Notes: generated by a model not told the origin, from the letters alone. Numbered from the stretch's first letter, positions 3,876 to 29,979 are shown. The stretch is DNA of 64,000 bases from Macrostomum hystrix (GCA_950097015.1 CATNEN010000007.1:1-64000); one strand, 5' to 3'. Numbers and translations: made by a program.

Positions 3876-5098
3876 TCACAGGTCGATGCGGGCCACCTGA
3901 AGAAAGCTGAGGTCCTGCCTAGCCGAGTAGATCACAAATCGGTCCTGGCCGGGCACTGAAACATCGCTGCGCAGTGTCACGCTGATCTGGCTGCCGGCAT
4001 CCAGTGTGACCATGCCAACTGTCAGGCAGGTCAGCGGCCGCACTGTGCTCAGAACCCGGCCGGTGAACTTGGCCGAGCCGTCGACCTGTACGGTGCACTC
4101 GATACTCCGAGGCACGCTGACGTTGTGCATCCGGACCACCAGCTGGGCGGCCACATAGTACATGCCCGCCTGCAGCACCCGCACCGAGGTGTCGTCGGGC
4201 GTCACGGCGAAGGCGTCCTCTTGGTAGGCGTGCTTCGGCACCCAGGGCCGCACTGGGATGTCGTTTTTGTGCTCTGTAATAATGATAATAATAAATTATT
4301 ACACCTGCCACAATCGGGCCAGATGTGCTGCCGACTGAAGGCTGCGTACAGCTGTTCACGCAGGACGCCACACCCACCCTCCATCACCCCAGCTGATGCT
4401 GGTTCCCATTTAACAGCTGGGTGAACTGAAGCAAATCAGAGTTTGAGTGTCTTGCTAAAGGACGCAAATTGTTCCAGTGGAGTGGGGAATCGAACTCCCG
4501 ACCTTCAAGTCGTGAGTCCAACAGTCTAAACGCTAGGCTAAAATCCCCCTTGGGAAATTAATAAAAGGCAATTTCAGCACAAAAGTACATGCTTAATGAT
4601 CAGAGCAGTTTTCGATGGCGCTAAATTAATTACCTCTGCTCACGATGGCTCCCTGTCTCACTGTGCAGAAGAGACCTGGAAGTTGCCACCACACGCTGGC
4701 AACCTTTCTGAGCTCAGTCTCAGGGAGATCTGAAAATCAGATTTTTGAATCACTACAGATTGAGTCTAAATTATTGTAGGATTCCACACAGTTTTTGAGT
4801 ACTCCCATCTCAATCGCTCACCATTCGAGTCTCATCGGCGAGATGCTCGGATGAGTTCAACCAGCTGCTATTCAGCTTCGGATCGAATCGCTTCAGCCCG
4901 ACTGTTGTGCTGAAGGTGAGAACGCCGAGGACGCAGGCGGCCACCCGCTGCCGCAGCCAGAACTAGCCGGGAGTGCCTTCTCGCCTTGGACATGCGGACT
5001 TGACGACTGACTGTTGGCTTGGATGCAGCTGCTGGAGGCTCAACAGACTGAGCTTCCACTTGGAGCAGATGAGCATCGGGACTCGCCTCTTGAGACAT
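3876..5098 (-). pseudogene. TNF-like gene T1: type II membrane TNF-homology protein with two frameshifts in this sequence (pseudogene or assembly error)
   Basis: Exons 5098-4822, 4729-4634, 4273-3876. The last exon has VRVLQAGMYYVAAQL and ends SFLQVARI. Removing one G at 4944-4946 restores a TM helix (LVLAAAAVAACVLGVLTF). Adding one base at 4678-4679 restores the C-x8-C exon seen in paralog T2. TATA at ~5183-5191. Confidence 0.75.
4278..4550 (-). mobile_element. CORE-type tRNA SINE family B inside T1 intron 2
   Basis: CCCATTTAACAGCTGGGTGAACTGAAGC...GTGTCTTGCTAAAGGAC resembles the reverse complement of the MIR CORE. Reversed B and A boxes follow, with a (TTA)n tail. A second copy lies at 33085-33370. 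Confidence 0.7.
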
Positions 5099-5714
5099 GT
5101 TTGGTTGAGTTCAGTAGACTTGTTTCAATCGTTGATTTGCTTCTAGAATGGAAGCTTTTGTTAGCAAAATGAAGTCCCTGGCTTATTATAAAGCCTGGGC
5201 AACCCTTGGCCCGCGTTCCCTTGGCCATCATTCTAGCTAAAAATAGCAATTCTGAAGTGCTCCTTAGGCCTGCCGCCGACTGGTGTCGTTGCGATGAAAT
5301 CTCTGCAGCAGTTAAAATTAGAAGCTCATTGTGCCAGTTAGTGGCAGAGAATTGTGACGCCTCATTATTTTGTTGCTTTTGGCACAGCTTTCGCCGTTTA
5401 ATTTTGCAACCCTCGAGATTAAATTTAGGTCCAGTCGGCGGTTTTCGAATAAACGAAAATAAAACATCACAATAATTAATTATATTTAAACAAAGTTTAT
5501 TTTTGACAGTTTTAGCATTCTAAAAAAATTATAACCGACCTGATAATCTTTTTATTTCTCAGGTTAATCAATCAATTTATAACTGATGTAATTGATCTAA
5601 AAGATAATTTATAAATTGATCTCGTATCTGAAAATCGATGTGTTGATCGATTTTATTTTTATGAATTGACGATTTGATAATCAATGAATTGACTTATCTG
5701 ATAAAAATGATCTC

Positions 5715-7937
5715 TCTTATAATCTGTGGATTAATCTCTCTGATCATCTGTGGATTGAATTCTCTGATCATCTGTGGATTAATCTCTCTGATCATCTGTG
5801 GATTAATCTCGCTGATCATCTGTGGATTGAATTCTCTGATCATCTGTGGATTGAATTCTCTGATCATCTGTGGATTGAATTCTCTGATCATCTGTGGATT
5901 GAATTCTCTGATCATCTGTGGATTGAATTCTCTGATCATCTGTGGATTGAATTCTCTGATCATCTGTGGATTAATCTCTCTGATCATCTGTGGATTAATC
6001 TCGCTGATCATCTGTGGATTGAATTCTCTGATCATCTGTGGATTGAATTATCTGATCATCTGTGGATTGATCTCTCTGATCATCTGTGGATTAATCTCTC
6101 AAATCATCTGTGGATTGAATTCTCTGATCATCTGTGCATTAATCTCTCTAATCATCTGTGGATTAATCTCGCTGATCATCTGTGGATTGAATTCTCTGAT
6201 CATTTGTGGATTAATCTCGCTAATCATCTGTGGATTGAATTTACTGATCATCTGTGGATTAATCTCTCAGATCATCTGTGGATTGAATTCTCTGATCATC
6301 TGTGGATTGAATTCACTGATCATCTGTGGATTGAATTATCTGATCATCTGTGGATTGAATTCACTGATCATCTGTGGATTGAATTATCTGATCATCTGTG
6401 GATTGAATTCACTGATCATCTGTGGATTGAATTATCTGATCATCTGTGGATTGAATTATCTGATCATCTGTGGATTGAATTCTCTGATCATCTGTGGATT
6501 AATCTCTCTGATCATCTGTGGATTAATCTCGCTGATCATCTGTGGATTAATCTCTCAAATCATCTGTGGATTGAATTCTCTGATCATCTGTGGATTGAAT
6601 TCACTGATCATCTGTGGATTGAATTATCTGATCATCTGTGGATTGAATTCACTGATCATCTGTGGATTGATTTATCTGATCATCTGTGGATTGAATTCTC
6701 TGATCATCTGTGGATTAATCTCTCTGATCATCTGTGGATTGAATTATCTGATCATCTGTGGATTGAATTCACTGATCATCTGTGGATTGAATTATCTGAT
6801 CATCTGTGGATTGAATTATCTGATCATCTGTGGATTGAATTATCTGATCATCTGTGGATTGATCTCTCTGATCATCTGTGGATTAATCTCTCAAATCATC
6901 TGTGGATTGAATTCTCTGATCATCTGTGGATTAATCTCGCTGATCATCTGTGGATTAATCTCTCAAATCATCTGTGGATTGAATTCTCTGATCATCTGTG
7001 GATTAATCTCGCTGATCATCTGTGGATTAATCTCTCAAATCATCTGTGGATTGAATTCACTGATCATCTGTGGATTGAATTATCTGATCATCTGTGGATT
7101 GAATTCACTGATCATCTGTGGATTGATCTCTCAAATCATCTGTGGATTGAATTCTCTGATCATCTGTGGATTAATCTCTCTGATCATCTGTGGATTGAAT
7201 TATCTGATCATCTGTGGATTGAATTCACTGATCATCTGTGGATTAATCTCTCTGATCATCTGTGGATTGAATTATCTGATCATCTGTGGATTGAATTCAC
7301 TGATCATCTGTGGATTGAATTATCTGATCATCTGTGGATTGAATTATCTGATCATCTGTGGATTGATCTCTCTGATCATCTGTGGATTAATCTCTCAAAT
7401 CATCTGTGGATTGAATTCTCTGATCATCTGTGGATTAATCTCTCTGATCATCTGTGGATTAATCTCGCTGATCATCTGTGGATTAATCTCGCTGATCATC
7501 TGTGGATTGAATTCTCTGATCATCTGTGGATTAATCTCTCTGATCATCTGTGGATTAATCTCTCTGATCATCTGTGGATTGAATTCTCTGATCATCTGTG
7601 GATTAATCTCTCTGATCATCTGTGGATTAATCTCTCTGATCATCTGTGGATTAATCTCTCTAATCATCTGTGCATTAATCTCTCTGATCATCTGTGCATT
7701 AATCTCTCTAATCATCTGTGCATTAATCTCTCTGATCATCTGTGGATTGATCTCTCTGATCATCTGTGGATTAATCTCGCTGATCATCTGTGGATTGAAT
7801 TCTCTGATCATCTGTGGATTAATCTCTCTGATCATCTGTGGATTAATCTCTCTGATCATCTGTGGATTGATCTCTCTGATCATCTGTGGATTGATCTCTC
7901 TGATCATCTGTGGATTGATCTCTCTGATCATCTGTGG
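5715..7937. repeat. 24-bp minisatellite (CTGATCATCTGTGGATTGAATTCT)n, ~90 copies
   Basis: Direct inspection; explains the LIICGLNS / DHLWIEFS pseudo-ORFs. Confidence 0.97.
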
Positions 7938-8082
7938 AATAATGTACCCCTGAATCGAAGGACTTTAAAATGCGATCGCCTGTCAACAATTGAGAACTTT
8001 GACTAAAAAAACTGATAAAAGAGTTGCGACTTTTGAAGAAATCAGACTTGGGTGGCAACAAAGTTTATAAAACTGCTAAACT

Positions 8083-9235
8083 ATGGTTGATGAGTCAGTC
8101 AGGTCAGGTGACACAGAAGCATGTGCTATGACTTTAGAAAAATGCGAACAAGGATACAGAGCTAGAAATCTAAATCAAATGCAGCACGCGGCACACTGCG
8201 TGAGTGTCAGAGTGTCAGAGGTGTCAGAGTTTCAGAGTGTCAGAGTGTCAGAGTGTCAGAGTGTCAGAGTGTCAGAGTGTCAGAGTGTCAGAGTGTCAGA
8301 GTGTCAGAGTGTCAGAGTGTCAGAGTGTCAGAGTGTCAGAGTGTCAGAGTGTCAGAGTGTCAGAGTGTCAGAGTGTCAGAGTGTCAGAGTGTCAGAGTGT
8401 CAGAGTGTCAGAGTGTCAGAGTGTCAGAGTGTCAGAGTGTCAGAGTGTCAGAGTGTCAGAGTGTCAGAGTGTCAGAGTGTCAGAGTATCAAAGTGTTAGA
8501 GTGTCAGAGTGTCAGAGTGTCAGAGTGTCAGAGTGTCAGAGTGTCAGAGTGTCAGAGTGTCAGAGTATCAAAGTGTCAGAGTGTCAGAGTGTCAGAGTGT
8601 CAGAGTGTCAGAGTATCAAAGTGTCAGAGTGTCAGAGTATCAAAGTGTCAGGGTGTCAGAGTGTCAGAGTGTCAGAGTGTCAGAGTGTCAGAGTGTTGGA
8701 GTGTCAGAGTGTCAGAGTGTCAGAGTGTCAAAGTGTCAGAGTGTCAGGGTGTCAGAGTGTCAGAGTGTCAGAGTGTCAAAGTGTCAGAGGTGTCAGAGTG
8801 TCAGAGTGTCAGAGTGTTGGAGTGTCAGAGTGTCAGAGTGTCAGAGTGTCAAAGTGTCAGAGTGTCAGAGTGTCAGAGTGTCAGAGTGTCAGAGTGTCAG
8901 AGTGTCAGAGTGTCAGTGCAGTTTCATCATGTCAGTGGTAAGTAGCCAAGTCCTAAATATCCTGAATCAAGTTGTAATGTTTGGCTGAGTAATTTGACTG
9001 GCAATTTCCGGTTTGATTTAGCAAGATTTCAGAAGTGCAAGTGTTCAGGAAGTGAATCGGAATGTTTAACAAGATCTCAGTCGATTGAATCCTTCCTAGA
9101 AGCTTCATCTTTTACTTGCTTGCACTTGCAATTGCAAAATCGTTTATTTGTCATCGTCTGTTACAGATGACGTGCATTGATAAGTGTCCAGCAATTACAT
9201 GCGAAACATGGACTTGTCAAGCTAAGCCAGGTTAA
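8083..9235 (+). CDS. Candidate two-exon Cys-rich micro-protein (8083-8199, 9167-9235; ~61 aa)
   Basis: Strong GTGAGT donor at 8200, TGTTACAG acceptor at 9166, in-frame exon MTCIDKCPAITCETWTCQAKPG*, AATAAA at ~9285. No signal peptide found and the model is uncertain. Confidence 0.3.
8204..8915. repeat. 8-bp tandem repeat (GTCAGAGT)n
   Basis: Direct inspection; begins immediately after the GTGAGT donor at 8200. Confidence 0.97.
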
Positions 9236-9393
9236 AAGTGTAACGAGTGACGGAGTGGGGTTGTAACCTGTACGATGTATGCAATAATAAATAAATGTAC
9301 ATAGACGTACACTTTAATTTCGGGTCTTGAAGTTAAAATTAATCTAAAAACACCCTCACTCAACGACACAAACTTTTAGAAGTAAAAGGGAGC

Positions 9394-10008
9394 AAATTGT
9401 CCCCAGTCCGATTGTCCCCAGTCAAATTGTCCCCAGTCCGATTGTCCCCAGTCCGACTGTCCCCAGTCCGATTGTCCCCAGTCAAATTGTCCCTAGTCTA
9501 ATTGTCCCCAGTCAAATTGTCCCCAGTCCAATTGTCCCCAGTCAAATTGTCCCCAGTCAAATTGTCCCCAGTCAAATTGTCCCTAGTCTAATTGTCCCCA
9601 GTCAAATTGTCCCTAGTCTAATTGTCCCCAGTCAAATTGTCCCCAGTCCAATTGTCCCCAGTCAAATTGTCCCCAGTCAAATTGTCCCCAGTCAAATTGT
9701 CCCTAGTCTAATTGTCCCCAGTCAAATTGTCCCCAGTCCAATTGTCCCCAGTCAAATTGTCCCCAGTCAAATTGTCCCCAGTCAAATTGTCCCCAGTCAA
9801 ATTGTCCCCAGTCAAATTTTCCCTAGTCCAATTGTCCCCAGTCCAATTGTCCCCAGTCCAATTGTCCCCAGTCCGATTGTCCCCAGTCCGATTGTCCCCA
9901 GTCAAATTTTCCCTAGTCCAATTGTCCCCCAGTCAAATTGTCCCTAGTCCAATTGTCCCCAGTCAAATTGTCCCCAGTCAAATTGTTCCCAGTCCAATTG
10001 TCCCCAGT
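9394..10008. repeat. 15-bp minisatellite (AATTGTCCCCAGTCA)n, ~40 copies
   Basis: Direct inspection. Confidence 0.95.
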
Positions 10009-10440: not shown

Positions 10441-12203
10441 TCACTGGCCAATCCTCGTCACCTGCAGGAAGGTGAGTTCCTTCCTACAAACGTGCAGCCT
10501 GAACTGATCCTGCCTCTCTCTGATTCCGTCCAGACTTGTCAGACTGACCCGGATTCGAGCTCCGGCCCGCAGGTGCCGTATGCCGATCGTCATGCAGGTC
10601 AAGGGCCGGCTGACGCTCAGTGACCTGGCAGCCGAACTGGGATCACTGTCGTCGATGTGCAAGGCGCACTCGATGGTGCGGACTGAGCTGGCATCCACCA
10701 GCTGGGCCACGAGCTGCGTGGTCATGTGGTACAGGCCGGGGCGCAGTACAACCAGTGTGGAGCCGCCATCGGCCAGAGAGAAGGCACCGTCTGCGACGTT
10801 TCCACTGCTGCTGTCTGGAGTCCATGGCGCCACAGTCACTGAGCTCTTGCCAGCTGGAATGCAATTTTAAGGGGCTAAATGACTGCAGACCTATTGCGGT
10901 ACCAACTACCAACTGCAGTACCAACTACAGAACCAACTACAGAACCAACTACAGAACCAACTACAGAACCAACTACAGAACCAACTACAGAACCAACTAC
11001 TGCACCAACTACAGGACCAACTACAGAACCAACTACAGAACCAACTACAGTACCAACTACAGTACCAACTATGGTACCAAAAGCAGTGCCAACTACAGTA
11101 CCAACAACAGAACTAACTATGGTACCAACTACAGTACCAACTAAACCACCAACTACAGTACCAACTAAACCACCAACTACAGGACCAACTACAGTACCAA
11201 CAATTACTAACAGTTGTCTAATCGGTTACCTCTGCTCAGAATGTCCATGTCGCGGCACAGATTCCCATAGAACTTGCTTTGACACGATTCCAAGCGTTCG
11301 TAAGCGATCCGCAGAGTGATCTAGAATGCGTATTGAATTCGTTTGTCAGGATTCAGAAGGCCCATGTTGGTCAGTGATTGAATACCCAGCCAGGATTTTG
11401 TAGGGCTTACATTATCAGCCAAGACGCTGTTCGCATTGTCCATGGTCCTGGCCACCTGCAGGTAGGTGCTCTCCGGCTTGAACACTTGGATCCTGAACTG
11501 GCTCTTGTCCAGAGAGTCGTCAAGGTTGCGCAACCGGACACCAATCACGTCACCACCCCGCAGCCTCAGAATGCTGACCGCCAGGCAGCTGATTGGCCGG
11601 CCGGCGCTCACGGACCGACCAGAGAAGGCCGCCCGGCCGTTGATGGTGATGTCGCACACGACGTCCTTGGCTGCGCCGGCTTCCTCCAGCAGCAGCTGGG
11701 TGGTGAGCTGAGTTTTTATTTTATACAAACCAGGCCGCTGCACCTGCACCTGTGCCGCCTGATTGACCACCGCGAAGCTGCCAGCCTTGGCGGTGCCATC
11801 GACAATGGCCCAAGGTCCGAGCTCGACATTTTTCTGACCCTCTGAAGTTTAAAAGTCAGTCAGTCAACAATTCTGGTTAATTCTCTAAATAACAAACCAT
11901 TGGCATTTAAAAAATTTAGCTAATTTTCTCACTTTTGGTCAGCACGATGGAGTTGCGGCAGAGGCTGCCGTTAAAAACTCCCTGGCACGATGTCAGTTGT
12001 TGGGAGTCGACTTTCATAAAAATCTGGAAGTTAACATTAAGAAATAGTTATTTGAGCCGTACAGTTAGGCGCGAAGGTTCACAAAGGTGCGCGAAATTTA
12101 CCGTGTCGGGAAGTTGGGACGAGTTCCCGAAAGGCGCGCCTTGTGCCAGCGGTATTCCTCCTAGGAGCAGCAGAATAGCGACCACGGCTCCGAAGCTGAG
12201 CAT
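10441..12203 (-). CDS. TNF-like gene T2: secreted protein with two tandem TNF-homology domains (375 aa)
   Basis: Exons 12203-12102, 12023-11933, 11841-11411, 11320-11230, 10853-10441. All introns are GT-AG, phases 0/1/0/1, 1128 nt open. Signal peptide MLSFGAVVAILLLLGGIPLAQG. Domain motifs GPW...VQRPGLYKIKTQL...STYLQV and APW...VLRPGLYHMTTQL...TFLQV. TATAAA at ~12328-12333. Confidence 0.85.
10899..11203. repeat. 12-bp minisatellite (ACCAACTACAGA)n in T2 intron 4
   Basis: Direct inspection; lies between donor 11229 and acceptor 10854. Confidence 0.9.
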
Positions 12204-12949
12204 TCTCAGATGAGAAGTAGATTGATTCTTGGCGCAACTGGGCATACTGGCGAAATTTGATCAGGAAGCCTCGGTGAGTTTCTCTTAGAAGACTCGTTAA
12301 CTTTGTGGCAGAGAAATTTGCGCCTTATTTATAGGCAATTTTTTGTCAGGTCATCCGCGCACTTCAGTCTAAATTGTCACTTCCGTTGGTTTCGCCACAG
12401 GCTGTAAATAGCATCAGTTTAGCCTCGCCCTCGACCAAGCCCTTCTAAAAATAGCGCCCGCCAACTCGAAAAGCCGCCAATTTTTTCATTCGCCATTCCG
12501 CACCGCCATTGTGTGATTCTTCCTGAAAATAACCTCTCGCCTTTGTTGACCATTGCCAAAAATACCCATTGTGCACCTGCCACAGTGGATGAAATTAGAA
12601 ACCTGTTGTTTGTGTTATCAATAAACTTCGACCTAGAGATTAATCAGAACTTGAATAGTTTTTTAATTTCTCAATTTGGCAACATTTCTTAGAAACAAAG
12701 TTCACCATCGCATACATTTTTAGACGAAAACATATTTTAAAGAAATTTCCTAAATACAATGGCCTTTTAAAACGCCCTAAATTCTATGATTTTAGTATTT
12801 TAAAAATAAAATCACGAAAAAAGTACCGGTTTATTAAACAAATATTATGATTCTCAATAATTGTTGCCCATCTGACGGACAGGCCCAAAATATTCCTTTA
12901 ATTAATTCCCACTCCACTTAAATAATTTGCGCCATTTAGCAAGACAAAC

Positions 12950-15900
12950 TGAATGCCAAAAGAGTGTCTCAGTATCCCTGAAGAGTGTCTCAGTATCCCT
13001 GAAGTGTGTCTCAGTATCCCTGAAGAGTGTCTCAGTATCCCTGAAGAGTGTCTCAGCATCCCTGAAGAGTGTCTCAGTATCCCTGAAGAGTGTCTCAGTA
13101 TCCCTGAAGTGTGTCTCAGTATCGCTGAAGAGTGTCTCAGTATCCCTGAAGAGCGTCTCAGTATCCCTGAAGAGTGTCTCAGCATCCCTGAAGAGTGTCT
13201 CAGTATCCCTGAAGAGTGTCTCAGTATCCCTGAAGAGTGTCTCAGTATCACTGAAGAGTGTCTCAGTATCCCTGAAGAGTGTCTCAGTATCCCTGAAGAG
13301 CGTCTCCGTATCCCTGAAGAGTGTCTCAGTATCCCTGAAGAGTGTCTCAGTATCCCTGAAGAGTGTCTCAGTATCCCTGAAGAGTGTCTCAGTATCCCTG
13401 AAGTGTGTCTCAGTATCGCTGAAGAGTGTCTCAGTATCCCTGAAGAGCGTCTCTGTATCCCTGAAGAGTGTCTCAGCATCCCTGAAGAGTGTCTCAGTAT
13501 CCCTGAAGAGTGTCTCAGTATCCCTGAAGAGTGTCTCAGTATCACTGAAGAGTGTCTCAGTATCCCTGAAGAGTGTCTCAGTATCCCTGAAGAGCGTCTC
13601 CGTATCCCTGAAGAGTGTCTCAGTATCCCTGAAGAGTGTCTCAGTATCCCTGAAGAGTGTCTCAGTATCCCTGAAGAGTGTCTCAGTATCCCTGAAGAGT
13701 GCCTCAGTATCCCTAAAGAGTGTCTCAGTATCCTGAAGAGTGTCTCAGCATCACTGAAGAGAGTCATAGTATCCCTGAAGGGTGTCTTAGTATCCCTGAA
13801 GAGTGTCTCAGTATCCCTGAAGAGTGTCTCAGCATCCCTGAAGGGTGTCTTAGTATCCCTGAAGAGTGTCTAAGCATCCCTGAAGAGTGTCTCAGTATCC
13901 CTGAAGAGTGTCTAAGCATCCCTGAAGGGTGTCTTAGTATCCCTGAAGAGTGTCTAAGCATCCCTGAAGAGTGTCTAAGCATCCCTGAAGGGTGTCTTAG
14001 TATCCCTGAAGAGTGTCTAAGCATCCCTGAAGAGTGTCTCAGTATCCCTGAAGAGTGTCTCAGTATCCCTGAAGAGTGTCTAAGCATCCCTGAAGGGTGT
14101 CTTAGTATCCCTGAAGAGTGTCTAAGCATCCCTGAAGAGTGTCTCTGTATCCCTGAATTATGTCTCAGTATCACTGAAGAGTGTCTCAGTATCCCTGAAG
14201 AGTGTCTCAGCATCCCTGAAGAGTGTCTCAGTATCACTGAAGAGTGTCTCGGTATCACTGAAGGGTGTCTCAGTATCACTGAAGAGTGTCTCTGTATCCC
14301 TGAAGAGTGTCTAAGATCACTGAAGAGTGTCTCAGTATCCCTGAAGAGTGTCTCAGCATCCCTGAAGAGTGTCTCAGTATCCCTGAAGAGTGTCTCAGTA
14401 TCCCTGAAGAGTGTCTCAGTATCACTGAAGAGTGTCTCAGTATCCCTGAAGAGTGTCTCAGTATCCCTGAAGAGCGTCTCCGTATCCCTGAAGAGTGTCT
14501 CAGTATCCCTGAAGAGTGTCTCAGTATCCCTGAAGAGTGTCTCAGTATCCCTGAAGAGTGTCTCAGTATCCCTGAAGAGTGCCTCAGTATCCCTAAAGAG
14601 TGTCTCAGTATCCCTGAAGAGTGTCTCAGTATCCTGAAGAGTGTCTCAGCATCACTGAAGAGAGTCATAGTATCCCTGAAGGGTGTCTTAGTATCCCTGA
14701 AGAGTGTCTCAGTATCCCTGAAGAGTGCCTCAGTATCCCTGAAGAGTGTCTCAGTATCCCTGAAGAGTGTCTAAGCATCCCTGAAGGGTGTCTTAGTATC
14801 CCTGAAGAGTGTCTAAGCATCCCTGAAGAGTGTCTCAGTATCCCTGAAGAGTGTCTCAGTATCCCTGAAGAGTGTCTAAGCATCCCTGAAGGGTGTCTTA
14901 GTATCCCTGAAGAGTGTCTAAGCATCCCTGAAGAGTGTCTCTGTATCCCTGAATTATGTCTCAGTATCACTGAAGAGTGTCTCAGTATCCCTGAAGAGTG
15001 TCTCAGCATCCCTGAAGAGTGTCTCAGTATCACTGAAGAGTGTCTCGGTATCACTGAAGGGTGTCTCAGTATCACTGAAGAGTGTCTCTGTATCCCTGAA
15101 GAGTGTCTAAGATCACTGAAGAGTGTCTCAGTATCCCTGAAGAGTGTCTCAGCATCCCTGAAGAGTGTCTCAGTATCCCTGAAGAGTGTCTCAGTATCCC
15201 TGAAGAGTGTCTCAGTATCACTGAAGAGTGTCTCAGTATCCCTGAAGAGTGTCTCAGTATCCCTGAAGAGCGTCTCCGTATCCCTGAAGAGTGTCTCAGT
15301 ATCCCTGAAGAGTGTCTCAGTATCCCTGAAGAGTGTCTCAGTATCCCTGAAGAGTGTCTCAGTATCCCTGAAGAGTGCCTCAGTATCCCTAAAGAGTGTC
15401 TCAGTATCCCTGAAGAGTGTCTCAGTATCCTGAAGAGTGTCTCAGCATCACTGAAGAGAGTCATAGTATCCCTGAAGGGTGTCTTAGTATCCCTGAAGAG
15501 TGTCTCAGTATCCCTGAAGAGTGCCTCAGTATCCCTGAAGAGTGTCTCAGTATCCTGAAGAGTGTCTCAGCATCACTGAAGAGAGTCATAGTATCCCTGA
15601 AGGGTGTCTTAGTATCCCTGAAGAGTGTCTCAGTATCCCTGAAGAGTGTCTCAGTATCCCTGAAGAGCGTCTCCGTATCCCTGAAGAGTGTCTCAGTATC
15701 CCTGAAGAGTTTCTCAGTATCCCTGAAGAGTGTCTCAGTATCCCTGAAGAGTGTCTCAGTATCCCTGAAGAGTGCCTCAGTATCCCTAAAGAGTGTCTCA
15801 GTATCCCTGAAGAGTGTCTCAGTATCCTGAAGAGTGTCTCAGCATCACTGAAGAGAGTCATAGTATCCCTGAAGGGTGTCTTAGTATCCCTGAAGAGTGT

Positions 15901-18026: not shown

Positions 18027-21000
18027 TGTTGCATATGCTGCATGCTATGCTGATTTATTTATAGACTTATTCTCGTCTAAAAGTAGTCTATGTGCCATTG
18101 AGGCAAAATGCTACTGTACATCTTGTTTGCTAGAAGCTTCAATGCCCCTTAAGGGTAAAGAAATATAACAGCGAGCTTTAGGCTCATGCCAACTTGGAGC
18201 TGCTCTAATAACGCACTTCTGCAATTCACAAACCCAAGTGCCTTCGTGATCTTCAAACGTAACATGGCGACGAGGAAAAACCACTGGATTCACTGAAGAA
18301 GCTGTGTACTGACTACCTTACGTTCGCAGGAGTGATGACTCAGCCGTTGGATTTTCGACTTGGAGAACTGCCTCTTTCTTATCCCGAGATCGAGCAGTAT
18401 TTCAAAAGACTGCAGTTTTACCTGGTGGCTTCAGGGAAGCAAGCTCACTCCAAAGCAGTACTTCTAGCGACATGCGGAGACGCAGCATTCACACTGATAG
18501 AAGAGCTTGCAAAGCCAAAAGACATCACGAAGGAGGAAGTAACGTTCGATGATATCCAGAATTCGCTAACCGCACATTTTAAGCCCAAAACATTGCTTCA
18601 CTATGAGAGACACGTGCTTCACTCCATGGTGCAAAAGGAGGGTGAATCGATTGCTACCTACATCGAATGTCTGAAGCGCCAAGCCAACAAATGCAGATTC
18701 GGTGATCTCCGAGACGAACTAATTCTGTCGCAGTACACATTTGGCTTGCGGAATCAAGTGCTAAAGCAAAAGCTTCTTTCAAGAGAGGATGTCACTTTGG
18801 AAGGCGCGATACAAGAAGGTTTGCTGTCTGAGTCGATTAGGATGGCAACAAGCAAGCCGGATACAATCGCGGCGGTGCAGAAGAAGAGTCATTCCGGATG
18901 GGTAAGACCAGAAAAGACGCCTGCCCACAAGCAGCAGCACAGTTGGGACAACCGCAAAGGACCGACAAAGCCTCGTGAAACTGGTCACTGCCACACATGT
19001 GGAAAAGCAGGACACGTCAGGTCAAAGTGCCGATTTAGGGATGCGCAGTGCCGAAAGTGTGGGAAGGTTGGACACCTGGCAGCAGTTTGTCGCTCCAAGA
19101 CCGTTAATACTCTGCAGAACGTGTGCCGATCAGAGGATTCTAGCCATGGGCATGTAGGAGCAATCTACGCGACAACCGACATCGGAGATCGTCATTCAAC
19201 GGATCAGTGGTTTGTTACATGCAAGATTGGAGACGCGAGTGCTAAGATGTTGGTAGATACAGGCAGTCAAGTTACCATCATACCCAAGCACGTTGCTGAC
19301 GGTTCCAATCTGAAATTCAAACCAGTTACTAAAACGCTTAAGTCGTACGGCGGATTCCAGCCAGAAATATACTCAGTCATTCAGGATGCAACGATTACTC
19401 TGTCCGATGGAAGATCTGCCACGGGAAAAGTGTATGTAGGCAGCGATTTATTGGCTATACTGGGAATGGATTTCCTATCGCGCCTGCACATACTACACAT
19501 CGACGGAAGTATTTCAGAAGATCTTCTTTGCATGCCAGTGGTGCGTGATGCAAATTCGAGATTTCTCGCGAGTTTCCGCCTCCGCTCAGATGCTAGAACG
19601 GACGGCATGCGATATCCAGCCAGATCTTTGCCCTTTTCTATGAAGTCCATGGTTGAGACCGAGCTCAAGCGACTGCTAAATGCAGGCATTATATATCCAG
19701 TGGAAGACCCAACCGTTTCTGCGCCAATTGTTCCAGTTTTAAAGCAGCAAGGCTCAGCGAGACCAATACGTCTATGTGGCGACTACTCAGTCACGCTTAA
19801 TCGCATAATCGATGCCGATCGCTACAAGCTTCCAAAGCTAGAAGAAATCCTTTCTAAAATTCCTAATGCCAAGTACTATTCAGTCCTGGATTTAGAAGAC
19901 GCGTTTCTTCAAGTTGCGCTTTCTCCTGAGAGCCAGAAACTTACCTGCATATCTACGCACCTGGGCTACTTCGCTTTCAAAAATCTTCAGTTTGGAATTT
20001 CCGCAGCACCATTAATCTTCCAAGAAGTCATGGATGATGTGCTCAGAAACGTAGAATGCACTGCTTCGTATCAAGACGATATAATAATTGGAACTCCCGG
20101 AGACCGACAACAACACATCCTGGTGCTAAACAAGGTAAAGCAGCGTTTGGCTGACAATGGGTTCAAGATTAACGCCCGCAAGTCACAGGAATGCCTACAA
20201 AGCGTCAAGTTTCTCGGGTTCATTATCCACAACGGCAAGCTCGAGCCTGATCCAGCGAGAATAGAAGCATGGGAAAATATGCCAGATCCCACTGATAAAG
20301 ACCGATTAAAAAGCGCCTTGTGTACTCTTCGACACTACGGTCTGTTCTGCAAGAATTTTTCTATCATCGCTCGACCGTTGTATTCATTATTGAAGAAAGG
20401 ACAGCACTGGTTCTGGAACAAAGAGCATTCACAGGCCTTCAAGAGATTGAAGCAAAGTATCCGACAAGGAGCGATAACTGCTTACGACTCGTCAAAGCGT
20501 CTGTTTCTGACTTGTGATGCGTCAAAGGATGGATTGGGGTTCGTGCTCTCTCATGACAGAGAGCAGAGACAGATTGTTTGGCTCTGAAGCAGAGTGCTCA
20601 CACCCGCAGAGGGTAATTATGCAAATATCGAACGAGAGGCGCTGGCTATCGTCGAAGGAGTTAAGTATTTCCACCAGTTTCTCGCCGGAAGAAGATTTAC
20701 AATTCTATCAGACCACAGACCGCTTCAGTTCATTTTCGATCACCATAAATCTTCTGAACGTGTTTCCGCCAGGCTTCAACGCTGGTCGCTCATTCTACGA
20801 GCGTATGACTACAAGATCGAATATTCCAAAGGCGATTCGATGTACGCCGCTGATACTCTGTCGCGACTTCCAAATGGCAATTGCATAACGAAGGAATCCG
20901 TCAACCTACTGTCAATAAATGCCCTGGACACTTTTGCGAATTCCGAAGATCTACTGCGTCGAATTGCTAAGACGAATGACTGCCATCTGCAGACACTGAA

Positions 21001-22380
21001 GCATTACATTCAGGGTGGATGGCCGGAGTACTTACCGAAAGTCATGTTGCCTTACTCAAAAGGGAAGCTTGAGTATACTATTCAGAACGGTGTTGTGTTT
21101 AAAGGATTGCGGATCGTTCCACCCAGTGAATTACGAACGGAAATTTTACACCTGCTCCATGAAAATCATCCCGGAGTTGTGCGCATGATTCGTTTGGCAC
21201 GACAGTATTTCTGGTGGCCAGGAATCGACACGCAGATAAACTGCTTCGTTCGAAGGTGTGCACAGTGTCAGCTTCACGCAAGAAAGCGAACTAACTCCAA
21301 TTTATCCTCTTGGGAAGATGCGCAGACGTTCTTCGAGAGAGTACACGCAGACGTCGCGATATTCAAAGGACACCGATTCCTAGTGCTAGTAGACGCATTC
21401 TCGAAGTGGGCGGATGTTCGGCATATCGATTCAATGAAATCGCAATCTGTAATTCGGGCATTTCGACAAACATTTAATTACATGGGTCTCCCACAAACCT
21501 TGGTGACAGACAACGGTACAAATTTCACGTCCGCCGAATTCGCCACGTTCCTAAAGGAGAACTTCGTTCAGCACCTTCTGACTCCTCCAGGTCACCATCA
21601 GTCGAATGGGCAAGTGGAGCGGATAATAGAAGAGTTTAAATTTCATCTAAAGAAGTCAAACGCTACTTCTGACGCGGCTGAACTAGAGCGAATTGCAATC
21701 GCGTTCTGTCTGTTTCACAATACTACACCGCAATGCAATGGTTCTATTCCTGCTGGTTTGGTGTTTCTTCAACTGCCAAGAACTCGCTTGTCAAGAGTGT
21801 GCACTGACTGGATTCAACCTCGACTACAAGCCGAACCAGTCTTCATTCGTGTGGAACACAAGGAAGAGAGGGTTCCGTCAATGATTACTACTTCCGTCGG
21901 AACCAATACCTTTCGTGACGACAAGGGTCGGCTGGTACATCAATCGGATATTATACCAAAGCTTCATGACGTGACTGACGGATCTGATTCCGACCAGAAT
22001 CAAAAACCCGTCTCGGAGGAAAAAACTACCGACGTCACGGCTAATCAAGCTACGGAAACGGCGCAAAAACTGAGGCGGAGTTCTCGCCAACGTCGACCCC
22101 CTGATCGTTTGGGTTACTGACGTTTTTCAGCATCGGTGGGGGTGTTGCATATGCTGCATGCTATGCTGATTTATTTATAGACTTATTCTCGTCTAAAAGT
22201 AGTCTATGTGCCATTGAGGCAAAATGCTACTGTACATCTTGTTTGCTAGAAGCTTCAATGCCCCTTAAGGGTAAAGAAATATAACAGCGAGCTTTAGGCT
22301 CATGCCAACTTGGAGCTGCTCTAATAACGCTCTTCTGCAATTCACAAACCCAAGTGCCTTCGTGATCTTCAAACGTAACA
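18027..22380 (+). mobile_element. Full-length Ty3/Gypsy LTR retrotransposon (Mag-like architecture)
   Basis: 238-bp TG...CA LTRs at 18027-18264 and 22143-22380, with one mismatch seen. 5-bp TSD GATTG, PBS TGGCGACGAGG at 18265, purine-rich GGTGGGGGG tract before the 3' LTR. Confidence 0.97.
18332..22120 (+). pseudogene. gag-pol: gag-pol polyprotein interrupted by a single in-frame TGA at 20585-20587
   Basis: Two CCHC knuckles, protease LVDTGS, RT YQDD, RNase H (LTCDAS...IVWL*SRVLTPAE.NY..IERE), integrase HHCC and D-D-E. ORFs 18332-20587 and 20594-22120 are in the same frame. Confidence 0.93.
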
Positions 22381-22697: not shown

Positions 22698-23612
22698 TCA
22701 CGGCAGCCGCACCGCACGAATGTAGGTGCTGGCCTCAGTTGTCTGCAGCTCCTGCCGACTCAGCATCCGCAACTTCATCGTGACTTTGTCGCCAGCCCGC
22801 AGCGTCACCAGAATGTTCAGCTTGCAGACGAGGCTGACATCCGTGACAGCGGTGCCAGGCTCCGATTGCAACATCTCGTGCTCGCAGACGCGCCTACCGA
22901 TCACACCGTTGATGGCCAAGCCGCCGGACAGGTGCAAGTCACCCGAGCTGAAGCGAACGCGCGCGGCTGCGTCAACGATGTAGACGCTGTCGCGAAGGGC
23001 ACGGATGTGCCTCCGGTCGGGCGTCAGCTCAAAGTCCTCGGCCAGCTCGCCAAAATGCTTGAGTGGCCCCAGACTGCCAGCAGTCATGTATCGCCTGGCC
23101 TCCCAGCAGGGGTCGCCAGGGCATGCGCCGGTGTTGGACACGTCCAGAAAGAACTCTGACAGTCGGGCGCTCTGCGGCTTGTCCTGTCTGTGTGGGCTGC
23201 TCAATCGGCCGATCTGCTGCAAGTTTCGGACGCTGAGGGCCAGCGCAACGAGCGCGCAGGTCGCGACGGCCACGCCAGCGACGACTCCAAGGCGGGGCCT
23301 CCAGCAGCTTTGAGATGATCGTAGCCTCGAGGATGTGACACCTTCTTCTAGTCGGCATAGCTCCGTCGGGGTGACGCACTTCGATTCAAGTTCGCTGAAA
23401 TTATCCGTGATAGTTTCGGCTGAGCCATCCACTGCCTGGTGGGCCTTGTCGGTTACTCTCATGGCTGTGGCTGAGTTCTTGTGAGTTTGAATTTTAGCTA
23501 CCTTTTTTACGGCGCGTTTAAATTTTGTTAAAACGGACGCTTCCCCGATAAATCCCTGGATTGGCCCTGGCACAAGCCGTTGGCGACGTTCCTTATAGCT
23601 CGGTGCTGGCAT
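22698..23612 (-). CDS. TNF-like gene T3: intronless type II membrane TNF-homology protein (304 aa)
   Basis: Long N-terminal tail, TM GVVAGVAVATCALVALAL, domain with IRALRDSVYIVDAAARV, LRAGDKVTMKL and STYIRAVRL. Confidence 0.8.
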   Translation of the reverse strand: MPAPSYKERRQRLVPGPIQGFIGEASVLTKFKRAVKKVAKIQTHKNSATAMRVTDKAHQAVDGSAETITDNFSELESKCVTPTELCRLEEGVTSSRLRSSQSCWRPRLGVVAGVAVATCALVALALSVRNLQQIGRLSSPHRQDKPQSARLSEFFLDVSNTGACPGDPCWEARRYMTAGSLGPLKHFGELAEDFELTPDRRHIRALRDSVYIVDAAARVRFSSGDLHLSGGLAINGVIGRRVCEHEMLQSEPGTAVTDVSLVCKLNILVTLRAGDKVTMKLRMLSRQELQTTEASTYIRAVRLP

Positions 23613-23921: not shown

Positions 23922-24697
23922 AGAATGCCTGAAGAGTGTCTCAGCATCCCTGAAGAGTGTCTCAGTATCACTGAAGAGTGTCTCAGTATCACTGAAGAGT
24001 GTCTCAGTATCCCTGAAGAGTGTCTTAGCATCACTGAAGAGTGTCTTAGCATCACTGAAGAGTGTCTTAGTATCCCTGAAGAGTGTCTTAGTATCACTGA
24101 AGAGTGTCTCAGTATCCCTTAAGAGTGTCTCAGTATCCCTGAAGAGTGTCTTAGTATCCCTGAAGAGTGTCTAAGTATCCCTGAAGAGTGTCTCAGTATC
24201 CCTGAAGAGTGTCTCAGTATCCTTGAAGAGTGTCTCAGTATCCCTGAAGAGTGTCTTAGTATCACTGAAGAGTGTCTCAGTATCCCTGAAGAGTGTCTTA
24301 GTATCCCTGAAGAGTGTCTTAGCATCACTGAAGAGTGTCTTAGCATCACTGAAGAGTGTCTCAGTATCCCTGAAGAGTGTCTTAGCATCACTGAAGAGTG
24401 TCTTAGTATCCCTGAAGAGTGTCTCAGTATCACTGAAGAGTGTCTCAGTATCCCTGAAGAGTGTCTCAGTATCCCTGAAGAGTGTCTCAGCATCCCTGAA
24501 GAGTGTCTTAGCATCCCTGAAGAGTGTCTCAGTATCCCTGAAGAGTGTCTCAGTATCCCTGAAGAGTGTCTCAGTATCCCTGAAGAGTGTCTAAGTATCA
24601 CTGAAGACTGTCTCAGTATCCCTGAACAGTGTCTCAGCATCCCTGAAGAGTGTCTCAGCATCCCTGAAGAGTGTCTCAGCACTCCTGAAGAGTGTCA
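23922..24697. repeat. Second array of the same 21-bp satellite
   Basis: Same unit and orientation as 12950-17524; degenerate units trail to ~24830. Confidence 0.97.
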
Positions 24698-25243
24698 AAG
24701 TACCATGTAGTTTGTCCACAAAGTTTTCACTAAATTGAAACCGTAGGGTCCCAGAAGAATGTGTGGGACATCCCTGAAGAGTATCGGGGAAGCCTGGAAG
24801 TGTCCTTTAGTCCCTGAAGGGTTCTTGCGTATCATTAAAGAGATTAGAAGACATCGAAATTTTTATGGCTAATAAGCTAGCAAAACTTTTCTGAATTTTC
24901 AGAATTCCGTGTATTGTAACACTAGATGACTGGTTGCACTTGCTAGTATATTTTGGCTAACAGAATGTGTTCCATTAAGAAAGTTTTAATGATGATATAT
25001 ACACGAAATATAAAGCTTTGGTATAAAACAGCTATGCTTTTATGCAGGACATGCAATTTTGTAATGTTGGACGATTAGCGTCAAATAATAAAAAGTAACG
25101 AGATAGATGTTAATAAATGGAAGAGTAATGGAGCAGTAACAGCATGCCGCCAATTAGAACACTGCAGCTACATTGATTGAAGCAACTCGCACAATAAACG
25201 GTCATTCGGTCATGTAATCCTGCAATGGATGCTCACAGTGTGC

Positions 25244-26041
25244 TCATCCGATGCGGACCAGCCTTAGAAATGTACTCCGGGATGATTTCTGAACCATCTG
25301 CCGATTGTGCAGGTTCAGTTTGATTGACAGCTCATCTCCGGCCAGCAGTTTGGCGTATCCGCTGAGCTGGCACTGCAGAGTCTCCGACTGCAGCCCCAGA
25401 GACTCTGCTGGCAGCACGGGGAGGCGCTGGAGACAGTTCAGCACATCCATTTTTTCCAGATTTTTGGAGCTGCCCGCTTGCTGTCTAATGACCTCGATAG
25501 AGCCCTGCAGAGCCAGGCTGCCGGACTCGAAGGTCACGCGCACCTGAGCGTCAATGCCGAACACACCTGGACGCAGGATGCGAACCCGGCGTCGATCCTC
25601 GGTCAGCTGGAAGCAGCCAGCTTGGCTGGTTTGGTCTGTCTGGCGCAGCCGGCCCAGGCCAGTTTTGGTCATCATGTACTGCACGCCACTCAGGCACGGG
25701 TTTTCCAAGTTGCCTTCGTCCTCACATTTCTTCAAGGAAGATATGTCCAGAGCGAAAGCTGCGAATTGTGCCTGCGACTCGGCTGACTGCTGCTGCTGCT
25801 GCTGCATGGCCTGAAACAAACGTCTTCTTCCGCTGATATTGCCTTTGAGCATCTCGTCTAGGCCAGCCGGTGAGTTCCGGTCTCCAATGACAACAAGGCA
25901 GATGGCAACGAGGCCTAGCAGCAAGCCGGACCCAGCAGCGGTGGCAAGGCAGGCTTTGCGGCACGAGCCGGATCGCCTAGGAGCAGCGGAATTCACTTCA
26001 ATAGCTGACGGAGTCTGCACCAGAGGAAGTTCTTGAGACAT
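25244..26041 (-). CDS. TNF-like gene T4: type II membrane TNF-homology protein with an intronless CDS, EF-disulfide type (265 aa)
   Basis: TM GLLLGLVAICLVVIG. VRILRPGVFGIDAQVRV; NCLQRLP...QCQLSGYAKLLAGDELSI resembles the BAFF/EDA pattern; ends STFLRLVRI. Probable short 5'UTR intron (~26096-26045) and TATATA at ~26130. Confidence 0.85.
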   Translation of the reverse strand: MSQELPLVQTPSAIEVNSAAPRRSGSCRKACLATAAGSGLLLGLVAICLVVIGDRNSPAGLDEMLKGNISGRRRLFQAMQQQQQQSAESQAQFAAFALDISSLKKCEDEGNLENPCLSGVQYMMTKTGLGRLRQTDQTSQAGCFQLTEDRRRVRILRPGVFGIDAQVRVTFESGSLALQGSIEVIRQQAGSSKNLEKMDVLNCLQRLPVLPAESLGLQSETLQCQLSGYAKLLAGDELSIKLNLHNRQMVQKSSRSTFLRLVRIG

Positions 26042-26507
26042 GCCTGCTCTGATCTTATGCTCGTAGCAACAAAACTTGTCACGAATTACAGCTTACTTTC
26101 ACAGCACACACGCGCTTTTTATCTGTATGTATATATAGATTTGAGCGGAGTACCGTTAGACCACACAGTCTGGCCACTGTGCGACTAAAATTAGCTAGAG
26201 AGTAAGTTAAACGCGGTTGTCATTTACTTTGGTATGACCAGTGAAAAGCAGATTTGCGGTTTCAGACACCAGAGCCATTCTCTACTGTTTATTGAATTCA
26301 AAAGATATATGCCTAGTAAGCGTCACACTACAATAAGCGAAACGACACTTTTTTACACTTTCATCATTTATTTTTAGCTGCAAAAACAAGCATTTTTTCT
26401 AAAATTAGAAGTTAATTCCTTGTGTGACGCGTCCGCAAAGATTTTACTTTAGATCTTCTTATGGCGGTATACAAATATAGCAATATTTTTAATTTTTTTT
26501 TTACTTC

Positions 26508-27060
<553 letters not shown>

Positions 27061-27870
27061 TTTTTAGTTTCGGTTTTTTGGTTGTTTGTTAGTTTGGTAG
27101 TTTGTTAGTTAGTTTGTTTCCTTAAACTGGGAATTTTTTTAATTTCTGCGAACTCCAAAGACGGTCATTTTCCGCTAATCCGGAAATTCCGTTGCAAAAT
27201 TATTGGCGTCTTCCTTCACATCGTCATCTGGAAGTGCACATTGCGGATGTTTTTAAGAGTATGAAAATGTTTTCTGTTACTCTGTGTACCCATTTTACGC
27301 ACGGAAATCTGAACTTAGATCATATAAGCAAGTCGCGAAGGTTTTTTTACTTGTAACACTGCAAAGCTTTACCAAATGAAATTGAATTTCTAGAATGTGC
27401 TGATAAAATTAGCATTCAACATTCTAAAATTAAACAAACAAGGTAGCGTTTAGCTTCTTAGCGAACTTGCTTAACTGCCTTTTTAACTACTCGCGCATCT
27501 TAATTTAGTCAGAAAGAATGCCGTGAATGCGGATTTGCCCTTTTGTTATCTAGCCTAGTTATTACAGGATGGAGCCCTGTACATTAACCGGGCGCAACGT
27601 ACATACGCCCGTTAAACTGGCCTGGGACAGGTTAAAAACCGGAGCGAATGTACACTCCTAAGTGTACACTTAGTGAAGAGGTCCCGCGGAAAGCCCGCAA
27701 GCATTATGGCTAAAATTAGAAAGGGAAGTTCACCACCCACCCCCCTTCCAGCTGCATAAATTTTTCGTTTTTCGCTTTCTTAGTTCTCAGAAATAAAAAC
27801 GCTAAACGCAACTGTTTATAATTCTGAATTGTGGACCAGCTGAAATCATCAAACTCAAACAGCCTGCAAC

Positions 27871-29979
27871 ATGAATGGACCGTACGAGAATCTGATCCAG
27901 TCGGGCCTCGATAACCCAGCATGTTTGGATCACGCGGAATATGGGCCAATTGAGAAGCGATTTGTCAAACGACTCGACGATGCTTATCGAGTTAAAAGTT
28001 TGACTGCCAAATTTTCTGTCATTTGCACCGTGATCCTGCTGGTGGCAGCGGCCTCTACAACTGGCATGTCCGGCTGGGCCTATTATTCGATGCGGCAGAG
28101 AGCTGACAATAGTCCATGCGTGAGCACCGATATACTAAATATGAATTTTAAATAAAATACTAAATTCACTTGCACTGATTTTCATTGCAGACCTACACAG
28201 CCTTTGTCTTGGACACTGATGCCATACAGTCATGCGGACTGCCTGCTATGCACCACCCACCGTGTCAGATTAACTCCACCGGGGCATTGTTGACCTCTGA
28301 GATGTGTAAGTTGTGGATTTGCTTCTAAATCTGCTTTGTAAAGCTAGATTATCAATCCATTCTGTCCTCCGAGGCTAGATTAACAAACCATTGTATTCTC
28401 CGAGGCTAGATTAGCAATCCATTCCATCCTCCGAGGCTAGATTAGCAATCCATTCTGTCCTCCGAGGCTAGATTAACAAACCATTGTATTCTCCGAGGCT
28501 AGATTAGCAATCTTTTCTATCCTCCGAGGCTAGATTAGCAATCTTTTCTATCCTCCGACGCTAGATTAGCAATCTATTCTATCCTCCGACGCTAGATTAG
28601 CAATCTATTCTATCCTCCGAGGCTAGATTAGCAATCTATTCTATCCTCCGACGCTAGATTAGCAATCTATTCTATCCTCCGAGGCTAGATTAGCAATCTT
28701 TTCTATCCTCCGAGGCTAGATTAGCAATCTTTTCTATCCTCCGAGGCTAGATTAGCAATCTTTTCTATCCTCCGAGGCTAGATTAGCAATCTTTTCTATC
28801 CTCCGAGGCTAGATTAGCAATCTTTTCTATCCTCCGAGGCTAGATTAGCAATCCATTGTATTCTCCGAGGAAAGATTAGCAATCCATTGTATTCTCCGAG
28901 GAAAGATTAGCAATCCATTGTTTTCTCCGAGGCTAGATTAGCAATCGATGATAATCTCCTAAGCTAGACTATGTATTATATTAGTCATGCACCTATGACT
29001 CAAACGGCACAAACTTAATGAAGAAAAGAACAGTTTGATGCGAAAGTTTATTTTAAGCAACACAAGGTAATTACTGCCCAACACTTAGAAAAAGGATGTG
29101 CAATTATACTGAATCTGTACGCGTGCTTCACTCATTGAAGCTAACTAGGATGTCCCGCCTGTAACTTCTAAAAATGTTTGCTAAATTTATTACTATATTC
29201 AAATTTCCCTACTATCAGTAGAGTAGGTAGTAGGTTCTTGCAATTTTTAATTGAACGATGTGGAGCAGCCATGTTTATTTGCACAGTCAACAACGCAGTG
29301 GGGCCCTGGAAATCTGGAGAGCTGGACGGTGTTGTCGACGGCGGCTACAGCGGCAGCGTCTGCGGCTTCGAGCTGGAGAGGTCTAGGACCCACCTGGTTG
29401 TGCGCCAGCCTGGCTTGTACCAGCTGACTGGCCAGGTGAGCTAGAGGGCGAGGTAGAACGATTCGGCCAATAAATCATAATTGATTAATCAATCCATGAT
29501 CCATCGATTAAACAAACAAAGAATTACTAAGTTATTCAAAAGATAAATCGATCTATAAATAGAATAACACCGATCTATAAATAGAATAACCGATCTATAA
29601 ATAGAATAATCGATCAATAAATAGAGTAATCGATCGAATAATAAAATATTCGATCGATAAACTGCCGTATCGATCGACAAAGAGACTAAATCGATCGATT
29701 AAAAATCGATCAATGAAAGAGTATATAAAACGACGAATTACTTGTTGCTAGGTAACCTTCACTGACGATGGCCCGGCCCACCTGGAGTGGCAGGTGAATC
29801 ACGCCGAGTGGATCGCCGTGAAGCGCGGCCGCGGCGATCGCGCCGGGCCAACTCAGGCCCGCCTGGAGGCCGTGCGCCGGCTGGCCGCCGGAGACAAGCT
29901 GTCGCTGCACCTGGACCGGGGCGAGAGGCGCCTAGCAACCCCTGCCCCCACTACCCACATCGGGCTTGTCCGCCTCTGA
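27871..29979 (+). CDS. TNF-like gene T5: type II membrane TNF-homology protein (246 aa)
   Basis: Exons 27871-28119, 28191-28305, 29287-29435, 29752-29979. GT-AG introns, phases 0/1/0, 741 nt open. TM FSVICTVILLVAAA. The spliced product gives the signature LVVRQPGLYQLTGQ|VTF, then LAAGDKLSL and THIGLVRL. Confidence 0.88.
28344..28945. repeat. 31-bp minisatellite (TCCGAGGCTAGATTAGCAATCTTTTCTATCC)n in T5 intron 2
   Basis: Direct inspection, ~19 units. Confidence 0.95.
29540..29710. repeat. Degenerate ~20-22-bp ATCGAT-rich repeat in T5 intron 3
   Basis: Recurrent CGATCTATAAATAGAATAA units. Confidence 0.75.

Follow-up and report, generated by a model that had tools for sequence, protein, structure and literature searches.

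What kind of protein is encoded by a compact group of genes in the macrostomid flatworm Macrostomum hystrix that share a divergent domain of ~130 residues, and how do these genes differ from one another in architecture? The genes, here called T1 to T5, lie between positions 3876 and 29979 of the 64,000-nucleotide stretch that was analysed (the window; GCA_950097015.1 CATNEN010000007.1:1-64000), and together they contain six paralogous domains. The evidence assembled below makes it probable that they form a lineage-specific tandem array of five very divergent TNF-superfamily ligand genes.

Six paralogous domains within 26 kb

On the minus strand, open reading frames (ORFs) and their translations place the T1 domain at 3876-4273, the two domains of T2 at 10441-10853 (T2b) and 11411-11841 (T2a), T3 at 22698-23612 and T4 at 25244-26041; on the plus strand, the T5 domain is seen in translation and in transcript contigs as two parts, 29287-29435 and 29752-29979. 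All six TNF-homology domain (THD) frames are open across 125-150 codons, and no seventh copy was found when a five-domain profile was compared with the six frames of the whole window. This is the layout proposed by an earlier reading of the same DNA (the sequence-only reading), which had placed five genes with six domains within 26 kb, and the strand motifs that it described as shared are likewise present (G/A/R-P-W, RPGLY..Q, L.AGD and S/T-F/Y-L..R).

The paralogy of the domains is evident from BLASTP, with 38% identity between T1 and T2b (E 1e-26), 34% between T2a and T2b (E 2e-24) and between T3 and T4 (E 1e-20), 27% between T1 and T4 (E 1e-5) and 24% between T2a and T4 (E 4e-5). It is also evident from profiles that left one group out and were searched against six frames of the whole window (1285 translated segments): the profile of T1, T2a and T2b recovered T4 (2e-5), T5 exon 3 (29287-29435; 0.002) and T3 (0.13), and the profile of T3 and T4 recovered T1 (2e-6), T2a (0.0014), T5 exon 4 (0.009) and T2b (0.017), all at colinear profile positions. 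Because the profile of either subgroup finds the other, the comparisons indicate that the six domains are homologous to one another beyond chance. When five domains were placed in a tree together with outgroups, T5 being omitted since its domain is split, only the pairs T1+T2b (86/88) and T3+T4 (95/95) were resolved.

The gene structures carry a common signature, as a phase-1 intron lies 8-10 codons upstream of the G/A/R-P-W motif in T1, T2a, T2b and T5, and all predicted splice sites are GT..AG. The T1, T2a and T2b domains each occupy a single exon behind a small Cys-loop exon, T3 and T4 lack introns and hold the Cys pair and the THD in one ORF, and the T5 domain alone is split by an intron. 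An expectation that the domains would be divided across exons therefore holds for T5 and fails for T1, T2a and T2b.

Sequence and fold comparisons with TNF ligands

When the domains were compared as profiles with PDB sequences (177,635 distinct sequences, matches reported to E<=10), the matches were nearly all TNF ligands: 26 of the 28 obtained with the five-domain profile, among them 4-1BBL, RANKL, CD40L, CD70, GITRL and Spodoptera Eiger, and 22 of the 24 obtained with the profile of T1, T2a and T2b. These matches are individually weak, EDA being the best at E 0.008-0.014 (0.014 with the five-domain profile), and no C1q or BclA chain occurs among the 28 and 24, though many such structures exist. 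When 1.84 billion representatives were searched exhaustively with a profile, 11 matched at E<=0.001 and not one reached 1e-10; the top two (P0001 and P0002), which are bacterial repeat proteins (DUF11/DUF7507, YadA), were discarded as bias. The best genuine match is a Hydractinia multi-THD protein (LOC130621462, 6e-7); Eiger-like proteins from thrips and gall wasp are matched as well. Three of the four Hydractinia and insect matches pass Pfam TNF, the gall-wasp protein scoring 20.6 bits against a threshold of 23, and the xPW and PGLY..Q motifs of the cluster align with GPW and GLY.IY.Q of the insect Eiger-like proteins. None of the M. lignano proteins was matched by the domain profile at E<=0.001, though M. 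lignano proteins were in the collection searched, and the family appears to have no close relative in ~15 billion public proteins. Language-model features of full-length T3 lie nearest to mollusc and arthropod TNF clusters, with a weak value of 0.80.

Structure prediction leads in the same direction, with a ten-strand THD jelly roll as the predicted fold. The AlphaFold model of T2b has ten strands, with a predicted local distance difference test score (pLDDT) of 84.3 and a predicted template modelling score of 0.79. Its best Foldseek matches are 4-1BBL and EDA (6e-6), TNF ligands fill ranks 1-42 without exception and C1q proteins begin at rank 43. VIA-align, which is independent of Foldseek, likewise returned TNF ligands for the top 11 positions, with Z scores of 13.8 for TRAIL (root-mean-square deviation 2.5 over 116 residues), 13.5 for EDA, 13.3 for APRIL/BAFF and 12.6 and 12.1 for Eiger; among other jelly rolls BclA scored 12.3, the C1q domain of Caprin-2 12.2 and C1QL1 11.7. 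In the T4 model the THD has pLDDT values mostly of 86-95, and all 50 of its top Foldseek matches are TNF ligands, RANKL first at 1.7e-8. Placement in the TNF superfamily, as the sequence-only reading had claimed, is thus favoured by both the profile matches and the folds.

Membrane-anchored members: T3, T4 and T5

T3, T4 and T5 are predicted to be type II membrane proteins with the THD at the C-terminus. Topology was read from 19-residue windows, which reach a mean Kyte-Doolittle hydropathy of 2.0-2.5 close to the N-terminus in T3, T4, T5 and T2. The intronless ORFs of T3 (304 residues from the first ATG) and T4 (265 residues) each have one strongly hydrophobic window of this length, with means of 2.5 and 2.4, respectively. 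In T3 a cytoplasmic N-terminus is followed by the transmembrane segment (residues 108-126), a Cys pair (C-x4-C) and the C-terminal THD; in T4 the transmembrane segment (residues 35-53) leads into a helical stalk, a Cys pair (C-x10-PC) and the C-terminal THD, and the AlphaFold model of T4 runs from a membrane helix through a long stalk helix to the beta domain. Because the introns common to T1, T2 and T5 are missing from both genes, T3 and T4 may descend from a retrocopy. A phmmer search of PDB sequences with T3 gave no match, nor did a word-indexed search with full-length T3, whose exact sequence is without a record.

T5 is a spliced gene of four coding exons on the plus strand. Exon 1 (27871-28119) carries the start codon, the cytoplasmic part and the transmembrane segment (SLTAKFSVICTVILLVAAA) up to a predicted boundary at the donor TGC/GTGAGC, and exon 2 (28191-28305) is the Cys-loop exon (..QSCGLPAMHHPPC..), its 3' end taken from contigs and its 5' end predicted. 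The first half of the THD (GPW .. RQPGLYQLTGQ) is encoded by exon 3 (29287-29435), both of whose boundaries are found in contigs from runs X1 and X2, and the second half and the stop codon lie in exon 4 (29752-29979), from which the 3' untranslated region extends to ~30301. Reads and contigs were placed on 28950-30450 only. Two public runs, both from one study, yielded contigs (1086 and 1116 nt) that cross the junction 29435/29752, so that the predicted splicing of the cluster is borne out in RNA at this T5 junction in both runs; the contigs omit 29436-29751 (GT..AG) and open exon 3 at 29287. Because the contig letters just upstream of 29287 map uniquely to 28276-28305, the preceding exon ends at 28305, which differs from the place predicted by simple ORF reading. 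Only the last two junction sides of T5 are directly observed in the contigs; the model of four coding exons at canonical sites agrees in phase throughout, and the contig stretches upstream of 29287 (387 and 428 nt) agree with this model plus a short 5' untranslated region. Within the intron 28305/29287 a 31-nt unit is repeated 19.5 times in tandem (28343-28946, plus strand).

T2, a predicted tandem two-domain chain

The T2 model comprises five exons on the minus strand, with every junction GT..AG and phases of 0, 1, 0 and 1. Exon 1 (12102-12245) supplies the start codon and a hydrophobic N-terminus (MLSFGAVVAILLLLGGIPL, then AQG/AP) with mean hydropathy 2.36. It is followed by a 91-nt Cys-loop exon, exon 2 or X (11933-12023), and by exon 3 (11411-11841), which encodes the first THD, T2a, between a phase-1 acceptor and a phase-0 donor (AAT/GTAAGC). 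Exon 4 or X' (11230-11320) is a second 91-nt Cys-loop exon and a duplicate of exon 2, and exon 5 (10441-10853) encodes the second THD, T2b, and the stop codon behind a phase-1 acceptor (TTCCAG/CT). X and X' agree exactly in length (91 nt), and their products are identical at 12 of 30 residues, including SCQ..F.G.LCR. These features indicate that T2 arose through tandem duplication of an exon pair consisting of the 91-nt Cys-loop exon and the THD exon, and the in-phase exon model makes a single chain with two THDs plausible. The N-terminus probably serves as a signal peptide, though it could be a signal anchor, and the product is most likely a secreted two-THD chain. A VGSVVG-type repeat between X' and the T2b exon was considered as a coding linker and rejected because the phase-matched GT donor of X' precedes it and the phase-matched acceptor of T2b follows it. 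A 36-nt repeat at 10907-11201 falls in the last T2 intron.

T1 and the conflict at its 5' end

T1 reads as a copy of a T2b-type unit. Its terminal exon (3876-4273, minus strand) encodes the whole THD and the stop codon behind a phase-1 acceptor (TTACAG/AG), in the same acceptor context (CAG/AG) as T2a. A Cys-loop exon (..ASCVNSC..) is predicted from sequence and phase fit at 4305-4378 on the minus strand, with its 5' boundary at 4341 or 4378, and its donor (GCAG/GTGTAA after 4305) would leave a 31-nt intron before the THD exon. An alternative frame of this exon (..MEGGCGVLREQ..) was rejected since the phase of its donor is incompatible with the THD frame. The 5' exon region (4822-5098, minus strand) shows a frame conflict: the frame that begins with ATG (5098-4868) has no hydrophobic segment (mean hydropathy -0.01) and runs into a stop, and a transmembrane-like segment (QRVAACVLGVLTFSTTVGL, mean hydropathy 1.34) lies in a different frame (4962-4822) that extends up to a GTGAGC donor.

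The conflict could stem from a real frameshift in a decaying copy or from misassembly of a GC-rich run. It is also possible, by analogy with M. lignano, that a spliced leader provides the start codon, as the leader of that species ends in ..GCATG and trans-splicing affects ~30% of the genes there (PMC8629364). An AG lies directly upstream of the ORF in the transmembrane frame, at 4963/4962. Of the three architectures first proposed for the cluster, the intronless type II form (T3 and T4) and the spliced type II form (T5) are upheld and the tandem form of T2 is consistent in phase, and T1, because of its frame conflict, is at most a candidate membrane form.

Two side features of T1 deserve mention. 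The predicted intron at 4274-4304 (minus strand, GTGTAA..TTACAG) is only 31 nt long, a size that, if real, is close to the lower limit of animal spliceosomal introns. The long T1 intron also holds a tRNA-like stretch, or one resembling a short interspersed element, at ~4480-4570 (minus strand), one frame of which reads ..GLTT.RSGVRFPTP.., typical of the T-arm GGTTCGATTCC motif.

Competing explanations for the cluster

Several results weigh against an array of five TNF ligands. Scanned with Pfam as seven separate pieces (domains or exons, not exon-joined), all members stay below the PF00229 gathering threshold of 23 bits, T1 reaching 16.9 and T2b 13.8 bits, and PF00229 gives no match for T2a, T3, T4 or the T5 exons. 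A profile of T3 and T4 only finds no match among PDB sequences, and three metagenomic C1q/BclA-like proteins from the 1.84-billion search (P0004 to P0006, E 3.5e-5 to 6.8e-5) equal the insect TNF proteins in score. The language-model features of the isolated T2b domain lie nearest to phage and bacterial C1q/BclA-like clusters, a shape search of the Atlas returned phage tail-fibre, bacterial C1q-like, EDA and APRIL clusters mixed together, and the structural margin of T2b over C1q and BclA is only ~1.5 Z units in models whose folding alignments included insect and cnidarian TNF domains and may be biased to the TNF fold. At the level of the genes, RNA support extends to T5 alone among the five, and the 5' exon of T1 is out of frame with its transmembrane segment.

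In one rival reading, which we consider improbable, the domains are gC1q-like or another jelly roll of the C1q/TNF clan (BclA-like or lectin-like), and would serve as secreted or membrane pattern-recognition or adhesion heads and not as TNFR-binding cytokines. The gC1q domain, the BclA C-terminal domain and TNF share one Pfam clan, and gC1q and the C-terminal domain of Bacillus BclA have the same trimeric jelly-roll fold; Z scores of 12.3 for BclA and 12.2 for the Caprin-2 C1q domain nearly equal the 13.8 of TRAIL. BclA_C, at 19.2 bits for T1 and in another instance 13.1 bits against a cutoff of 38, is moreover the best sub-threshold Pfam match of T1 and T2a, and C1q- or BclA-type Pfam domains are present in three of the nine non-spurious matches of the 1.84-billion search. 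However, PF00386 (C1q) has no match at E<=10 in any of the seven pieces, no collagen-like Gly-X-Y repeats occur upstream of the domains in any frame, and the type II anchors of T3, T4 and T5 correspond to TNF-ligand topology. The motif series is common to published Macrostomum TNF ligands as well. TNF ligands are therefore favoured over C1q, with considerable confidence, because the PDB profile matches include TNF ligands and no C1q or BclA chain, the anchors are of type II, collagen repeats are absent and Eiger-like proteins have motifs that align with xPW and PGLY..Q.

A different concern is that the cluster may be partly decaying, with T1 and possibly T3 or T4 untranscribed or broken and a functional repertoire smaller than five, which we regard as a real but lesser possibility. 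The ATG frame of T1 ends at a stop at 4868 and has its transmembrane-like segment in another frame, the T1 Cys-loop exon has a weak acceptor and the 31-nt intron, and the genes sit amid large minisatellites and a retrotransposon. Furthermore, the two runs with T5 transcripts contain 0.20-0.22 of the words sampled over 5001 bases (25100-30100), and because T5 alone accounts for this share, T4 was not assembled in either run. Yet these runs are small (~47 million letters) and absence from them means little, the six THD frames are intact, T3 and T4 are open over all their 304 and 265 codons, and a trans-spliced leader could supply the AUG of T1. An array of five TNF-like ligand genes, of which T1 to T4 are presumably expressed as well, thus remains the preferred explanation.

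Relation to known TNF ligands and possible mode of action

TNF ligands of free-living flatworms are already on record. Four M. lignano proteins contain Pfam TNF at E<1e-10 and six more were obtained from RNA-seq, M. tuba adds four TNF ligands and Microdalyellia three, duplications occurred within individual species, and M. lignano has one NGFR-like TNFR (Bertevello et al. 2020, PMC7519573). The M. lignano ligands cluster with Eiger and EDA, and proteins with two THDs have arisen in oysters and limpets by in-frame duplication (bioRxiv 10.1101/2024.07.27.603686). Two expectations of the sequence-only reading are accordingly not borne out: invertebrate repertoires are not small as a rule, as up to 27 paralogues occur in a mollusc and 9 in cnidarians (bioRxiv 10.1101/2024.07.27.603686), even if Drosophila has one gene (Eiger) against the five clustered paralogues here, and the system is not undescribed, since Macrostomum TNF ligands, their expansions and two-domain ligands have been published. 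The cluster extends the published flatworm TNF ligand family and does not represent a novel type of system.

Compared by eye, the published Macrostomum ligands (PMC7519573 Data S3), which are likewise type II proteins, run through their features in the order seen in T3, T4 and T5, namely a Cys pair (such as KC-x10-PC), LGP, PG.Y..Q, a conserved Cys, GD and STF(L/W)..VR, and the likeness extends to the C-termini, where ..STFLQIARLSD of M. tuba comp64136 can be set against ..LSFLQVARIDL of T1 and ..STFLRLVRIG of T4. The six C-terminal heptamers of T1 to T5 have no exact occurrence in the supplements of PMC7519573, and that study does not describe the genomic clustering, the two-THD chain or the intronless copies seen here. 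A further difference is that the published flatworm ligands pass Pfam TNF at E<1e-10, whereas T1-T5 stay below the cutoff. Eiger of insects and EDA of vertebrates are the best profile matches and share type II topology and the GPW and GLY..Q motifs with the cluster proteins, but identity to the cluster domains is only 20-25%, and the collagen stalk of EDA is missing here, where a two-cysteine loop exon precedes the THD. The predicted T2 resembles the multi-THD proteins of Crassostrea virginica, Lottia and Hydractinia (LOC130621462) in having more than one THD per chain; it differs in that there are exactly two and that a duplicated 91-nt Cys-loop exon accompanies each of them.

Each domain is a predicted jelly roll of TNF-homology type and is preceded by a short loop with two cysteines. 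If the proteins behave as their family would suggest, the membrane-anchored protomers of T3, T4 and T5 would assemble into trimers via the inner THD sheet. The trimers would then engage TNF-receptor-type proteins with cysteine-rich domains in the grooves between protomers, and might signal from the membrane or after shedding. T2, if secreted with ~50 residues joining its two THDs, could contribute both of them to a single trimer completed by a THD of a different chain, or could bridge two trimers. A bolder extension, in which the cluster belongs to a fast-evolving, lineage-specific TNF-like cytokine network missed by standard domain searches and T2 fills two of three trimer positions and a single-THD neighbour such as T1 the third, forming obligate asymmetric heterotrimers, is speculative and seems to us unlikely.

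The cluster has consequences for how flatworm ligands are counted. Published counts relied on PF00229, and because T1-T5 fall under its cutoff, the repertoire of free-living flatworms is probably understated; this matters for the proposal in the literature that parasitic flatworms have dispensed with a ligand of their own and rely on that of the host. The cluster also exemplifies how new ligand architectures emerge, through exon-pair duplication that yields a two-domain chain and through possible retrocopies, and T1-T5 are candidates for pairing with TNFR-like genes in an organism used as a model of regeneration.

Genomic setting of the cluster

Minisatellites and one Ty3/gypsy element make up ~40% of the 26 kb cluster, and the minisatellite arrays could be a driver of unequal crossing-over. 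A 21-nt minisatellite (unit AAGAGTGTCTCAGTATCCCTG) forms two arrays, one of 218 copies at 12960-17531, between T2 and the retrotransposon, and one of 37 copies at 23928-24696, between T3 and T4. Other arrays occupy 5713-7938 (24 nt, 93 copies), 8202-8916 (8 nt) and 9393-10008 (15 nt), and a (TAGT)152 microsatellite (26509-27118) separates T4 from T5. The Ty3/gypsy-type retrotransposon lies between T2 and T3 (18332-22120, plus strand), with its pol in two ORFs of 751 residues (protease, reverse transcriptase and RNase H) and 508 residues (integrase); the best match of the pol ORF at 18332-20587 is a Macrostomum lignano protein with 60% identity over the full length. Elsewhere in the window, inspection by eye pointed to an innexin-like exon (42135-42626, minus strand), a nicalin-like exon (49443-50174, minus strand) and a glycosyltransferase-like ORF (33389-34756, minus strand) that reads into a long YEPL repeat.

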